From NCBI GenBank assembly GCA_002269645.1, contig NIVC01001373.1:124001-188000 (forward strand): a stretch of 64,000 nucleotides of DNA, in the 5' to 3' direction. The translations under genes and the position numbers were made by a program. Positions 45,685-51,600 of the stretch are shown piece after piece. Position 1 is the first letter of the stretch. Every line of letters begins with the position of its first letter. The notes below the pieces were generated by a model. That model saw only the letters and a program-made list of their open reading frames with translations. It made no database searches and was not told the DNA's origin. This stretch comes from Macrostomum lignano (taxonomy: Eukaryota).

Positions 45685-48600
45685 TCACAGAGTGGCCAGC
45701 AGCTCCTCCAGCGCGGCGCGGCGCACAGCCGGCCAGGGCACGGCCTCATGGAGCCGCCAGAAGCGGCGCACGCGGCCCCAGACCACGGCTGGGAAGTTGG
45801 GCGTCCCGATGCCGTGCATCACGCAGGCGATGTTCCGCGCCGTCAGCCGGTGCTCGCCGCCGTACAGCCCGATGAAGGCGCGAACGCCGGCCCGGACGCA
45901 GGCCAGCGTCGACTCGTCGACAGCGTCGTCGTCGTCCTCGGCGTCGTCCTCGCCGGCGCCGCCCTCGAACCGGTCATCGCCTTCGACACTATTGGCGAAG
46001 TAGGCGAAGACGCCAGCGGCGATGGCGCGGCTGGCGGCGTCGTGCAGACTGTCGCCGGAGGATTCGCCCGGCTCTTGGTTGCTAGGGACGCTATCGTTGT
46101 TGCCATGGTCGGCAGCGAGGGAGGCGGACCGGGCCAGCAGGCGGTGCAAGCGGCGCATGTCGGACAGGGCGCAGCGCTCCACTCGGCGCAGGCGGGCGAT
46201 CACGTGATTGGCCAGCCCGTCGGCGACCTCGTGGCCCTGGCAGCAGCGAGCCAGCAGCATCCAGGCCGGGCGCTCCGGCTTGGCCACGACGCCGGAGCGC
46301 CTGCCGCTGTCGTTCCATTCGAGGCCGGCGAGGTCGCGACCGACGGCGCCGGGGTCCCAGCCGAATCGGTCGCAGAGGGCGGCCAAGTCGATGGTCGGAT
46401 TGGCGCCGTCGTCGGCTTCAGCGGCGGCACCAGCTGCGGCGGCAGCGGCTTGGTCGGCCAGGGCGGCGGCCACGCAGAGGCAGCGGCTGGCGGCCCAGGC
46501 GAGGCCGGCCGGGCCGGAGTAGCTGGACAGGCGGTAGCGGGAGTTGGCCCGGCCGAGGAGGCGGCAGCGGCCGGGGAAGCGGAGCTGCAGGTAGCACAGG
46601 AGGGTCTCGATGGTCTCCTCGGTGGCGTCCAGCTCCGCCACCGTCTCGGCGATGTCCAGGGCGCGCAGGTGGCCGCCGGGTGGCCAGGACTGGCCGCCGA
46701 CTGCGGGTGGGGCATACAAGGAGGAGAGGAAAATTCGAAGGGATAAATAATAAATGGGAGTTTCTACACGTGTGCTTCCTAAACTAAAATTCGAACTCGC
46801 GAATGCTAAGATTAAGCTTTATATTTCATTAAGTATGAGATGTGCGAAAGACAAAGATACCATCCATAGACCCATACGGTGGAGCACTATCACTGACAAG
46901 CAGACAGACAGACAGACAGACAGACAGACAGACAGACAGACAGACAGACAGACAGACAGACAGACAGACAGAAAGACAGACAGACAGACAGACAGACAGA
47001 CAGACAGACAGACAGACAGACAGAAAGACAGACAGACAGACAGACAGAGATACAGAAAGACAGACAGAAAGACAGACAGACAGACAGACAGATAGAAAGA
47101 CAGACAGACAGACAGACAGACAGAAAGACAGACAGACAGACAGACAGACAGACAGACAGACAGACAGACAGAAAGACAGACAGACAGACAGACAGACAGA
47201 CAGACAGACAGACAGACAGACAGACAGACAGACAGACACACAGACAGACAGACAGACAGACAGACAGACAGACAGACAGAAAGACAGACAGACAGACAGA
47301 CAGACAGACAGACAGACAGACAGAAAGACAGACAGACAGACAGACAGACAGACAGACAGACAGACAGACAGACAGACAGACAGACAGAAAGACAGACAGA
47401 CAGACAGACAGACAGACAGACAGACAGACAGACAGACAGACAGACAGACAGACAGACAGACAGAAAGACAGACAGACAGACAGACAGACAGACAGACAGA
47501 CAGACAGACAGACAGACAGACAGACAGACAGACAGACAGACAGACAGACAGACAGACAGACAGACAGACAGACAGACAGACAGACAAACAGAAAGACAGA
47601 CAGACAGACAGACAGACAGACAGAAAGACAGACAGACAGACAGACAGACAGACAGACAGACAGACAGACAGACAGACAGACAGACAGACAGACAGACAGA
47701 CAGACAGAAAGACAGACAGACAGACAGAGATACAGAAAGACAAGCTAAACAACAGTCATTTAAAATAATTAAAATTCCGAGCAAAAAGCAGGACAGCATT
47801 TTCGCTGGGGGGGGGGGTAAACAAGTATTTGTAGGTGCCGTGTGCGACAGCCAAAGTTAGTTGCAAGGCATTGCTCCAGACCAGGCAGTCACATGATAGC
47901 TGAGTTCTGACAAGCGGCAAGTACGTTACCGGAAGACAGTGTATTATTTAGCTCGTACAAAAACTGCTGAATAGAACCAATTTAGGGTACGAACACAGCT
48001 GTGTACAATTCTGTATAAATTTAGCACTGATGCGCATGCTGACATCTCAGTAATATTCACTGCAAAACTGATCACATTTTGGAGTCAACAGCCCGTCTGG
48101 ATGATAAAGTTCTCATAGCCATCGTTGGCACTGTACTGAGTCTGAATATAGACCTTGTAGAGTTCTAAGCTTTGAGGGCTTCGGCAAGTGACCCTCCCGA
48201 AATCCACGAGCTCGTGAATCCTGGCCTGCAGCATCTCAGCCAGCTGCCTGACACTGAAAGCTCCATGACTGCTCACAACATCAAGCAGCGCCTTCGGCAT
48301 GAAGCTGCCGCTCTCAGCGTGCCTATAGGCTTTGTACCCAGCCATGCTGGCAAAGATGGCGGCCGATCGCGGAAGCTGCGGCGGCAGCACGCAGCCAGAG
48401 GTGTCCGGGCTGACGAATCCGAGACTGCAGGCGAAGGCTGGCGGCCGGTAATTCCCGCCCGCCTCAGCGGCATGGAAGCGGCGGCCGCGACACGACTGGC
48501 CGAAGTACAGCAAGAAGGAGCCAAGGCTCGACAGAGGCAGCAGTAGCTCCTCCACGGTGACATTCTGGCCGTCCGATGCGCAAATCCCGGACTGGCCGCC

Positions 48601-51600
48601 GTGCGCGGAGACGGCCAGAAATACGCGGGAAGGCAAAGTCCACTTGTTGCGACAATCCTTGACGACATCTTCGATAAAGCGGCGGATTTCAGCGGCTGTC
48701 ACGCAGCCGTCAGCCGGACACAGCGAGCGCACGTTCCCGCTTGAGCAGCCGAGATGCTGAGCAATTTTTGAGAAGTTTTCCACGTCCATCTCGAAGCCAA
48801 GCCTGATACTTGATTTGTACTTGCCGACAGCGACAATCAGGAAGAGATCTGCCGAGCCCCGCTGGCTGCACTCAGCGGACAGCTTGGTCCCCAGCAGCTG
48901 AAGCCGCCTCAGCGGATTGTCTGGCACACTGGCTGACACGATATCGGCGTTCGGCACGCCCGACATCCAACGGGAGCTGAGCCCCGTGCAGTGCCTGACA
49001 ACCTCGCTGACCAAATTATCGACCGTTGCTGTCCGGCTGCCGGCCTCCAGACTCTCGAATGCCTGCAACACTTCCCGCCAGTTGACGCCATTTTTGCCAA
49101 AGTTGAAACTGTGAATCTCGGTGTTGCATAGCGAGGCGTGTTTCGGAGTCTGAGCTGGCCCGCTGCTAGACTGGCCAGTGCTGCATCTGCTTCTGCTGGT
49201 GTGGCCTATGCTGTTGCTTCTGCAGTTGCCTGTGCTGTTGCTTCTGCAGTTGCCTGTGCTGTTGCTTCTGCTGCTGTTGCTTCTGCTGCTGCTTCAGCTG
49301 CTGCCTATGCTGTTGCTTCTGCTGCTGTTGCTTCTGCTGCTGCTTCTGCTGTTGCTTCTGCTGTTGCCTATGCTGTTGCTTCTGCTGCTGCTTCTGCTGT
49401 TGCCTATGCTGTTGCTTCTGCTGCTGTTGCTTCTGCTGTTTTTGCCTCTGCTGTTGCTTCTGCTGTTGCCTATGCTGTTGCTTCTGCTGCTGTTGCTTCT
49501 GCTGTTGCCTATGCTGTTGCTTCTGCTGCTGTTGCTGCTTCTGCTACGACGGCTGCTGCTACAAGAAGGCTCCGCAGAGTTCGTCTGGCACGTCATCAAG
49601 AGAAACAGAGCCAGCCTGATGGGCTGGGAGTCGCGCAGGCCACACAGAGGCTCGTAAAGCTCGCTGTCCATCACGATTTGGCCACCGATCAACGCCTGCT
49701 GGCAGTCCGCGGTGACGCCAACCTCGTGGACAATCCAAGCCTCTCTATCGCCGCGCAACTTAGCAATGGACAAGAATCTAACAGCGCTGCCATGGTAACT
49801 CTCTAGCGAGTCGGCCACCTGACAGTGAACTTTGCACTGGTTGTTAAACAGCGAATCAAACTTGGCTCTGCAGGCGTCAGCAGCGGAGTCTGAGGAGCGG
49901 GTCAGCAGCAGGACAGGCACTGATGGGCGTTCAGTACTGGCAACTCCTGCTGGCATTGAGGCTACTGATGCTGGCGACGGCTTGGACATTGCGATCCGAT
50001 CAGGCGAATGGCTTATTGAGTAAAATACCTTTCTTAAAATCAGCTTTTATATCCATTTAAGGTGTGCGTCAGGATGTCAGTGTTAAATATAGATAGAAGT
50101 TAGCATGTGATTGATACAGTGAGTAAGGTATGCCAAGACAAGGAAAAACAAGTCAGGACCGGCTCAATAAGGCTCATCTCTCACTTGAATGTTTATTTTA
50201 CTAGTCTATTTTTGCTATGCGCATGCACTAGGGGTGAATCTCATAGGTGAATCCGAACACATTCGTTACATGAAACCGCAGTGTGCCACTGACTGCCGCA
50301 GGCGAGATTATTTTCAGGAAACAGCACAGCTGACCCCAATTGACCTCAGCTTTCCCAGGTGCAAAATTAACACTCTAAACTTTGCCACTCACCGGCGCCG
50401 CCCTCGCACTCAATTTTGTCAGCCTCGGCGGCTTCAGCGGCACCAGCGGCGCACAGCCGGCAGTCGGGCTTGACGGGGAACAGTCGCCTGATCAGCGCCT
50501 TGACTCCGGTCGGCTCAACGCAGTTGGCGAACACGTGGCGCTGCAGGCGGAGCAGGTCGGCGCCTGGCGGATGCGCCAGCAGGGTGTGGCAGTAGGCCGG
50601 GTCTCCATCACGACCGGCCCTGCCCACCTCCTGGGGTGGCGGCGTGGGGCGGTGGGTCATCTCAGGCGGTGTGGGTCAGTGCAGGCGGTGGGTCAGTGCG
50701 GGCGGTGGGTCAGTGCGGGCGGTGGGTCAGTGCGGGCAGTGGGTCAGTGCGGGTGGTGGGTCAGTGCGGGTGGTGGGTCAGTGTGGGTGGTGGGTCATGC
50801 GGGCAGTGAGTCAGTGCGGGTGCTGGGTCAGTGCGGGTGGTGGGTCAGTACAGGCGATTTGCTAGCGACTCAATGAGCATGGCGGGCGGACTCACCTGAA
50901 CATAGTCCCTATACGAGGCGGGCGGTGAAAAGTGCAACACGCAGCGCACGTCGGGCTTGTCGAGCCCCATGCCGAGAGCCACCGTGGCCGCCAGAATGCG
51001 GCACCGGCCGCTAGTGAAGGCGCGCTGAGCCCGACGCCGCTCAGCGGCCGACATGCCTGCGTGGTAGGCGCGGGCGGCAGCGGCGCCGCCAAGGGAGGTT
51101 CTGAGAAGGCCGGCAACGGCCTCTGCTTCGGCCCGGGAGCCGCAGTAGATAAGGATGGAGCCGCAGGATTTGTAGGGCTCAGAGTCCAACAGTTGGAGCA
51201 GGGCTTCGGTTTTGTTAAAGCCAGCTGAAGAGGCCGACAGGCGCAGGTTGGACGGCAGTGGGGGGCCCGGGTTCAGCAGCGGGTCCGCGTCCAGCAGGCG
51301 AGCAACGGAGCGGGCGGTCAGCGGCCCGGCAGTGGCTGTCAGGCCAAGGAAGCAGCGGACGGAGTAGACGGACCGGAGGACGGACAGCACGCGGAGGTAG
51401 GCGGGGCGGAAGTGGTGCGACCAGTCGGCCTGGACTCGGTTGGATGGGGGAGGCGAGGTCAAGGGGTCATTTGAGGTCATTTGGGGAATAAGTACAGAAT
51501 TCTCTTAGTACAGAGTTACGAGTAAACAAGTCATTAGGCTTGGGGAATTCAGTTATTTCTTCGAGGGGAATTCAGTCATTTTCTTCGAAGGGAATTCAGT

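Follow-up and report, generated by a model that had tools for sequence, protein, structure and literature searches.

A Macrostomum-restricted caspase-family gene lies within the last intron of RECQL4, probably by an accident of gene placement

A gene of the caspase family was found within the last intron of the RECQL4 gene in a 64,000-nt stretch of Macrostomum lignano DNA (contig NIVC01001373.1; the whole stretch is hereafter called the window). Positions are those of the whole window, and the features of the host and nested genes are all located on the minus strand. The nested gene is probably an independent, lineage-specific caspase gene that came to lie in RECQL4 by accident, and its copy in the window is either intact or very recently disabled. 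Its reading frame, the host intron and the associated signals were as follows.

46701..50392, minus strand: RECQL4 intron 5 (the last), 3,692 nt, GT-AG, phase 1; host of the nested gene.
50051-50044, minus strand: TATAAAAG, candidate TATA box, 62 nt upstream of ATG 49989.
48085..49989, minus strand: nested caspase-family gene, from ATG 49989 to the terminal TGA at 48087-48085, in one phase and with one internal TGA.
49588..49920, minus strand: N-terminal domain with a predicted caspase p20-like fold, approximately residues 24-134 (AlphaFold and Foldseek).
49188..49539, minus strand: coding tandem repeat in the interdomain linker (Tandem Repeats Finder (TRF), codon listing and alignments).
49294..49296, minus strand: premature in-frame TGA at codon 232; AGA (Arg) in the equivalent repeat units.
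48097..48846, minus strand: caspase catalytic domain with p20, p10 and family-specific C-terminal strands (PF00656, AlphaFold and Foldseek).
48804-48802, minus strand: S1 Arg of 'IRLGFEMD', in an invariant or nearly invariant column.
48603-48598, minus strand: active-site His-Gly of 'SAHGG' (His at 48603-48601), in invariant alignment columns.
48498-48496 (Gln) and 48492-48490 (Cys), minus strand: QSCRG; the Cys and Gly columns are invariant, and the Gln column is nearly invariant.
48324-48322, minus strand: S1 Arg of 'AYR', in an invariant or nearly invariant column.
47743..48084, minus strand: 3' flank of the nested gene, with only the variants AATAAT (47948) and AATACA (47945).

The whole coding unit, from TATAAAAG at 50051 to the stop at 48085, was located within the single intron. 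A 1.9-kb single-exon frame starting at ATG 49989 had been described in a first-pass annotation of this DNA. The start, the lack of introns and the single phase were confirmed, and no frameshift was present over the 1.9 kb, but the frame was interrupted by the TGA at 49296-49294. As assembled, the sequence comprises a 231-codon frame and, in the same phase, an open reading frame (ORF) of 328 aa (GTG 49071; open from 49293). Both halves matched one and the same M. lignano protein, P0001, without a change of frame (tblastn, E=9e-18 and 9e-84). Because P0001 and a second M. lignano protein, P0035, aligned with both halves in the same phase, the two ORFs were regarded as one gene. The coding frame contained 1 stop, versus 12-22 in each of the other five frames, and its 1,548 non-repeat bases contained 0 stops, versus a mean of 17.3 (minimum, 5) in 2,000 shuffles. 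The GC content at third codon positions (GC3) was 0.66-0.72 in the nested frame, compared with a total GC content of 0.42 in the flanking intron; in the RECQL4 exons, GC3 was 0.67-0.90.

The linker repeat was composed of units of 12, 15 and 39 nt with almost exclusively AGC, AAC, AGA, ATA and GGC codons, which gave a product rich in Ser-Asn-Ser-Arg. In alignments, this repeat was absent from the M. lignano homologues and therefore represented an insertion in the interdomain linker. The internal TGA was a single A-to-T difference from the AGA of the other repeat units. The reading frame as a whole is not intact: the TGA is located upstream of the caspase domain, within which the frame runs on without interruption. 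The next in-frame ATG after this TGA was found at 48966, upstream of the entire caspase fold.

The 328-aa downstream part matched the Pfam family Peptidase_C14 (PF00656) with E=1.2e-11 and 45.2 bits (cut-off, 21.4) over profile positions 5-211 of 233. The AlphaFold model of this part, built from 29 sequences, had a mean predicted local distance difference test score (pLDDT) of 79.6, with most of the core above 90. The best 50 matches of the model in the Protein Data Bank (PDB) were all animal caspases (Foldseek, E~1e-13; template modelling (TM) score normalised to the target, 0.68-0.75), including Sf-caspase-1, caspase-3, -6, -7 and -8 and CED-3, and neither a metacaspase nor a paracaspase was among them. 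Single-sequence searches of the PDB gave no significant match; the weak matches were to CED-3 and caspase-1, with the expected motifs aligned. When the window protein was aligned with 19-28 other caspase-family proteins, the invariant and nearly invariant columns were exactly those of the functional residues, namely, Arg, His-Gly, Gln, Cys and Arg. In pairwise alignments, the Arg and His of the nested protein fell on the positions of R179 and H237 of caspase-1, and its Cys and the Arg of 'AYR' fell on the Cys of QACRG and the Arg of 'SWR' in CED-3. In the numbering of caspase-1, Arg179, Gln283 and Arg341 form the Asp-binding S1 pocket.

Judging from sequence and model, the nested product is an animal-type (C14A-like) caspase. 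Since both the His/Cys dyad and the Arg/Gln/Arg S1 pocket are complete, the protein, if made, should be a cysteine protease cutting after Asp. The description of the C-terminal part in the first-pass annotation, a highly divergent C14A caspase distinct from metacaspases and paracaspases and with His-Gly, QSCRG and the S1 residues in place, was thus borne out. With the animal caspases of MEROPS C14A (caspase-3, -6, -7 and -8, Sf-caspase-1 and CED-3), the nested protein shares the fold, the His-Gly, the Q-x-C-R-G motif, the Arg/Gln/Arg S1 residues, the p20 and p10 parts and an intersubunit linker, whereas its identity to them was 15-18% in structure-based alignments; identity to other caspase-family proteins was 18-25% in sequence alignments. 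Unlike canonical caspases, the Macrostomum family has no GKPK loop ahead of the catalytic strand and possesses approximately 25 extra conserved C-terminal residues, and the nested protein has a predicted p20-like N-terminal domain instead of a CARD or DED. The Asp of the intersubunit linker was present as VSPD in the window protein and as QSD in P0001 and was absent from P0035. Because this Asp is not conserved within the family, activation by Asp cleavage of the linker appears doubtful.

The N-terminal domain (N-domain) comprises approximately 110 residues and was conserved in the three main M. lignano groups (P0001, P0035 and P0037). No Pfam match was found for it. In the AlphaFold model, which was built from five sequences only, it formed a β-α-β-α-β-β-α-β module with a pLDDT of 71, and 50 of the 50 listed Foldseek matches in the PDB were caspase chains, mostly large (p20) subunits, from caspase-2, -1, -4, -11, -3 and -8 (E from 3e-4, TM ~0.5). 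The third predicted strand ends in a family-invariant His (49728-49726), and the last one in a conserved Cys (49590-49588), so that in the predicted fold the two residues occupy the topological positions of the caspase catalytic dyad; in the P0037 type, this Cys may be an annotation artefact caused by intron read-through. With hhalign, the register was the one expected, in that the conserved Cys was paired with the catalytic Cys, but the alignment was not significant (E=0.12). Judging from the predicted fold, the N-domain is probably a degenerate p20-like pseudo-protease prodomain that takes the place of a CARD or DED.

The pairing of an active caspase-like domain with a caspase-like module whose catalytic competence is doubtful is reminiscent of cFLIP/caspase-8, separase and the tandem-caspases of invertebrates. 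cFLIP partners caspase-8, and separase has a pseudo-protease domain. In contrast to these, the extra module here is p20-sized only and N-terminal on the same chain, in a model of moderate confidence (pLDDT 71). Some distant matches (P0017 and P0031) also contained two caspase-like stretches.

Relatives of the nested gene were searched for at the protein level. A word-indexed search of 5.8 billion proteins returned one match, BOX15_Mlig012038g1 (P0001, 542 aa, 44% identity). An exhaustive profile hidden Markov model search of 1.84 billion representatives returned 34 proteins at E<1e-3; the matches below E=1e-10 were M. lignano proteins in 5 of 5 cases, and the rest of the 34 were mostly ordinary caspases (E=1e-8 to 1e-4). 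The family members fell into four groups.

Group 1: P0001 (BOX15_Mlig012038g1).
Group 2: P0002/P0035 (BOX15_Mlig014852g1 and BOX15_Mlig034312g1).
Group 3: P0003 and P0037 (Mlig023916 and Mlig006806), together with the UniRef entries P0004 and P0005.
Group 4: P0006/P0039 (Mlig018574), a weaker match (E=1.7e-8).

The sequence comparisons place the nested gene in a small, fast-evolving, Macrostomum-restricted caspase family. The window protein was 45-47% identical to P0001 and the P0035 type, which were 44% identical to each other, and 66% of the sites identical between P0001 and P0035 were also kept in the window protein. The nearest relative was the P0035 type, with 66% DNA identity over 720 nt and a proportion of synonymous differences (pS) of 0.60, versus 0.70 for P0001. 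The window gene and the genes of P0001 and P0035/P0002 share the same two-domain architecture, with both domains homologous and in the same order and the core in one exon. The M. lignano genes differ from the window gene in that they have neither the linker repeat nor an internal stop, each has an AATAAA past its stop, and their genomic contexts are others (antisense to an IP3-receptor gene; beside a TALE homeobox gene and a tandem paralogue). According to the exon maps, the P0001 gene is a single exon, in the P0035 type one large exon is preceded by one or two short 5' exons, and the more distant paralogues P0037 (two introns) and P0039 have internal introns. The database name of P0005 (UniRef A0A1I8GWC2), 'Triplex capsid protein 2', was not supported by its sequence and is likely an annotation error.

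For the window gene compared with its M. lignano relatives, the rate of non-synonymous substitution (dN) was ~0.47 at a pS of 0.60-0.70, and its ratio to the synonymous rate (dN/dS) was at most 0.23-0.41, these values being upper bounds because dS was near saturation. Considering these ratios and the retention of 66% of the sites identical between P0001 and P0035, the sequences indicate long-term purifying selection on the nested gene.

The host gene was found to be a RECQL4 orthologue with 6 coding exons and 5 introns. Apart from intron 5, its parts were located as follows.

50393..54123, minus strand: RECQL4 exons 1-5 and introns 1-4 (Pfam domains, database matches and splice boundaries).
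54123-53041, minus strand: exon 1.
52857-52255, minus strand: exon 2.
52117-51896, minus strand: exon 3.
51429-50896, minus strand: exon 4.
50630-50393, minus strand: exon 5.
46700-45685, minus strand: exon 6, the last coding exon, including the stop codon; matches 5LST.

The first large frame contained the Pfam domains Drc1-Sld2 (PF11719) and zf-CCHC (PF00098) and the start of DEAD (PF00270), and Helicase_C (PF00271) was found in the frame 50845-51480. All hallmarks of RECQL4 were present, namely, the Sld2-like N-terminus, the zinc knuckle, the RecQ helicase core and the RECQL4-specific C-terminal domain. The spliced helicase core gave one uninterrupted alignment with human RECQL4 (5LST) over all junctions (E=9.8e-117), and exon 6 corresponded to residues 476-652 of chain 5LST_A (E=3.2e-15). 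The best database matches were annotated as 'ATP-dependent DNA helicase Q4' and came from vertebrates, an annelid and bryozoans (42-48% identity). Introns 1-5 were 183, 137, 466, 265 and 3,692 nt long, and GT[GA]AG donors and CAG acceptors were present in 5/5 of them. Intron 5 had the donor G|GTGAGT (GT at 50392/50391) and the acceptor CCCGCAG| (AG at 46702/46701); it splits a codon after the first base, and the exons on either side join in frame. The earlier placement of the nested gene in RECQL4 intron 5, before the last exon and on the same strand, therefore held, and by this position the gene is part of every RECQL4 pre-mRNA.

The genomic placement of the relatives was compared at four 22-kb M. 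lignano loci, at which the family genes were located as follows.

L001 (NIVC01000975), 10001-11629: the P0001 gene, a single exon, antisense inside an IP3-receptor gene span.
L002, 10001-12521 and 19721-20116: tandem family pair.
L003, 2069-4342 and 10001-11910: tandem family pair.
L004, 5675-8213 and 10001-13002: tandem family pair.

The order of a TALE homeobox gene, a P0035-type gene and a P0039-type gene was the same in L002 and L004, which look homeologous; P0035-type genes thus lay downstream of the homeobox gene and upstream of the P0039-type paralogue at both loci. P0037 was found behind another family member, beside an SF3B3/CPSF_A-like gene. No RECQL4 exon was detectable within 10 kb of the family genes at any of the four loci. 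The window also contained a homeobox ORF (40932-42269, plus strand) that encodes a paired-type homeodomain followed by a long Gln/His/Ala-rich low-complexity sequence. Its homeodomain looks nearly identical to that of Pax6, and the ORF is presumably a single exon from a Pax6-like gene that converges on RECQL4; since the homeobox gene at the M. lignano loci belongs to the TALE class, microsynteny through the homeobox neighbour was rejected. Because RECQL4 exons were absent from the M. lignano family loci and no homeobox microsynteny was found, it was concluded that the position inside RECQL4 is not conserved with these M. lignano loci. An apparent strong protein match of ORF 28326-29360 to L002 was discarded, because a 15-mer repeat of the window and an (AGGAC)n repeat of L002, two unrelated simple repeats, had produced it. 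As a separate observation, P0001 is a second family member nested in an unrelated host, the IP3-receptor gene.

Signals through which the nested gene might be expressed were sought on both sides of it. The TATAAAAG box and ATG 49989 were both located in the intron as previously described, and this ATG was the first one after the box. The presence of TATAAAAG is suggestive of a promoter belonging to the gene itself, although an AT-rich stretch could give such a motif by chance. Approximately 30% of M. lignano genes are trans-spliced, with the acceptor motif YTNCAG (PMC8629364). No YTNCAG was found within 400 nt upstream of ATG 49989, and the nearest CAG was 300 nt upstream, beyond the TATA box; it is therefore unlikely that release occurs by spliced leader (SL) trans-splicing. 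Neither AATAAA nor ATTAAA was found in the 600 nt past the nested stop, where AATAAT and AATACA occurred approximately 140 nt downstream. An intronic non-coding RNA was also considered as the content of the intron and was rejected, with no Rfam matches in 44000-55000.

Accidental nesting appears to be the best reading because synteny is not conserved, strong processing signals are absent, and the copy carries a stop codon. According to this reading, the last RECQL4 intron would hold an independent gene of the Macrostomum-restricted family, whose protein would consist of a degenerate p20-like N-domain of ~110 aa, a low-complexity linker and a complete caspase domain. The gene would most likely be expressed from its own TATA-type promoter within the intron, and SL trans-splicing out of the host pre-mRNA would be a less likely route. 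One nonsense substitution (AGA to TGA) in the linker repeat would leave a gene that is either intact in reality or very recently disabled, and its position would be a lineage-specific accident of gene placement with, at most, ordinary transcriptional interference. Opposite-strand nesting is commoner in flies and humans, whereas the window case is same-strand. Otherwise, the arrangement resembles animal host/nested gene pairs of Drosophila and mammals, with a short, intronless, lineage-specific gene in one long host intron (PMC5174743, PMC11694760, PMC3192792). As a rule, nested genes come about when short, young duplicates insert into long introns (PMC5174743), catalogues of host/nested pairs exist for mammals (PMC11694760), and nested genes can interfere with their hosts through intron retention and cryptic polyadenylation (PMC3192792).

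Several observations weigh against an independent, accidentally nested gene. The full-length protein cannot be made from the sequence as assembled, owing to the in-frame TGA. The TATAAAAG motif alone was not statistically significant. No canonical poly(A) signal followed the nested gene, in contrast to all M. lignano family members examined, which had AATAAA 50-250 nt past the stop; this lack cannot be calibrated, since RECQL4 itself also had no canonical signal in its first 600 nt. No close homologue outside M. lignano was found in 15 billion proteins. The converse synteny comparison gave nothing either: the last RECQL4 exon, used as a query, returned no match, and the spliced helicase core retrieved RECQL4 from other phyla only and none from M. 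lignano. Finally, two recent P0035-type homeologues of M. lignano (L002 10803-12518 and L004 6450-8210), which are 89% identical and both intact, showed a dN/dS of 0.87 (bootstrap, 0.56-1.45), with 23 synonymous versus ~70 non-synonymous differences and, in addition, a 6-aa 'KPNFGE' duplication. This ratio is compatible with relaxed constraint in the family, which therefore appears to evolve fast or under weak constraint after duplication. A dN/dS near 1 among copies had been named in the first-pass annotation as speaking against its proposal; such a value was obtained for the recent homeologues but not for the window gene and its relatives (at most ~0.4). The Macrostomum caspase family evolves unusually fast for a protease.

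The state of the window copy depends on how the internal TGA is interpreted. It is quite plausible that the nested gene is intact and that the TGA arose as an error of assembly or base calling, or represents one allele, in a 350-nt repeat that is hard to sequence. A single base separates the stop from the AGA that other repeat units carry at this place, and the remainder of the gene looks fully constrained. However, no sign of an error was seen within the window; in repeats, errors of length are more typical than single-base substitutions, and this repeat keeps the frame.

A somewhat less convincing possibility is that the TGA is real and fixed and that the gene is a young pseudogene from which the full-length caspase is no longer made. 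The copy would then yield, at best, a 231-aa N-terminal fragment; a 293-aa caspase-only product from ATG 48966 is conceivable, given that this first in-frame ATG past the stop precedes the whole caspase fold, but speculative. A pseudogene would agree with the in-frame TGA, for which no usable intron that would remove it was found, with the lack of a canonical poly(A) signal and with the near-neutral dN/dS between the recent M. lignano duplicates. On the other hand, there is only one disabling change in 1.9 kb and no frameshift, all catalytic and S1 residues are kept, and the coding GC3 signature is strong. Since the copy has a single lesion and is otherwise intact, any loss of function would have been very recent.

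With respect to its origin, the nested copy had been described as retroposed or otherwise mobilised. It is unlikely that a spliced caspase mRNA was retroposed into the RECQL4 intron, although the coding sequence is intronless both here and in P0001, while the paralogues P0037 and P0039 have internal introns, the P0035 type has 5' exons merely added to one large exon, and both wholly intronless copies sit within introns of unrelated genes. The flanks were unique, and no poly(A) remnant, target-site duplication, flanking direct repeat, terminal or inverted repeat or repeated flank was found around the gene, so the sequence gave no support to mobilisation; no parent gene can be named. The single-exon core is older than the divergence of the window gene from the M. 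lignano genes (pS 0.6-0.7), so that such hallmarks would have decayed. A carrier transposon or retroposon was rejected for similar reasons: there were no terminal or direct repeats, and the flanks had neither a second copy in the window nor a counterpart at the M. lignano loci.

A quite improbable, more far-reaching reading is that the family represents a new architecture in which the p20-like module serves as a built-in dimer partner and that the nested copy is switched on with RECQL4. If this were true, a heterodimer of the cFLIP/caspase-8 type would be contained in one chain and could be activated without an adaptor platform or cleavage at a linker Asp, and stem cells that divide or carry DNA damage would turn on the window copy together with RECQL4. 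For M. lignano, a 2024 survey of lophotrochozoan caspases gives a kinase-like prodomain as the only unusual one in its main text, where this family is not mentioned (PMC11463336).

Functional coupling to RECQL4, by which caspase expression would be tied to transcription of the host or the promoter or poly(A) site of the nested gene would truncate RECQL4, is highly improbable. The position on the same strand within the last intron makes the gene part of every pre-mRNA, nested genes can cause intron retention and cryptic polyadenylation in the host (PMC3192792), and trans-splicing is frequent in M. lignano (~30% of genes, PMC8629364). Nevertheless, the family members at the four M. lignano loci lie in unrelated contexts without any RECQL4 sequence nearby, no trans-splice acceptor motif was found near ATG 49989, and the copy carries a stop codon. 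The suggestion that a poly(A) site in the nested gene could truncate RECQL4 had no support in the sequence, with no AATAAA or ATTAAA in the 600 nt examined, and a conserved coupling of a genome-maintenance gene to a death protease is not indicated. The link to RECQL4 is probably not biologically meaningful.

Removal of the stop by splicing was also considered. There were 60 in-frame GT..AG pairs that would excise the TGA, but the only donors available upstream of it were GTTTCT, GTGCCA, GTAGCA and GTCGTA, none of which fits GT[GA]AG. The intron consensus of M. lignano is GT[GA]AG...CAG (PMC8629364). That the linker repeat is, or contains, an in-frame intron can hardly be credited, even though, against the M. 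lignano proteins, the repeat stands out as an insertion and paralogue P0037 has an intron exactly where the N-domain ends, since none of the four GTs resembles the donors of all five RECQL4 introns, the candidate acceptors lie within purine-rich AGC/AGA repeats, and the period of the repeat is divisible by 3, as it would be in coding sequence. The only donor-like GT[GA]AG site within the nested coding region was found at 48276, in phase 0 and 63 codons before the stop; purely as speculation, splicing from this site to the intron-5 acceptor would enter exon 6 in a frame open to 46200.

The death machinery of flatworms is known to be rearranged: according to the 2024 survey, all flatworms have lost FADD, the parasitic ones have lost DED caspases, and some flatworm caspases have unusual prodomains (PMC11463336). 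A small, fast-evolving, genus-restricted family with a complete predicted Asp-specific active site and a predicted caspase-like N-terminal module would add to this picture, and the intact M. lignano genes of the family offer a concrete target for RNAi or transgenesis. For annotation, the locus illustrates that a real gene can hide inside an intron, that a long open frame read by eye may contain a stop within a repeat, and that nesting in a well-known gene need not imply functional coupling.

The window was also rich in tandem repeats. A (CAGA)n microsatellite at 46901..47742, with ~210 units and 94% matches (TRF) and reading (TCTG)n on the gene strand, takes up ~0.84 kb of intron 5, in the part that separates the nested gene from the RECQL4 3' splice site. 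Tandem repeats also made up most of three of the four short RECQL4 introns (50654-50864, 51534-51727 and ~52860-53000), with units of 17 nt in intron 4, 24 nt in intron 3 and ~19 nt ('catctctcaccctcacccg') in intron 1. An array of ~1.5 kb with a 36-nt unit (44193-45712), each unit of which contains the perfect 20-nt palindrome AGGGGGTCATATGACCCCCT, begins right at the RECQL4 stop codon and would thus form the RECQL4 3' UTR or the downstream region. Farther away, at 28329-29322, the 15-nt unit GGTCAGGATAGAATG was repeated in 66 copies with 97% identity and gave rise to long spurious ORFs on both strands.

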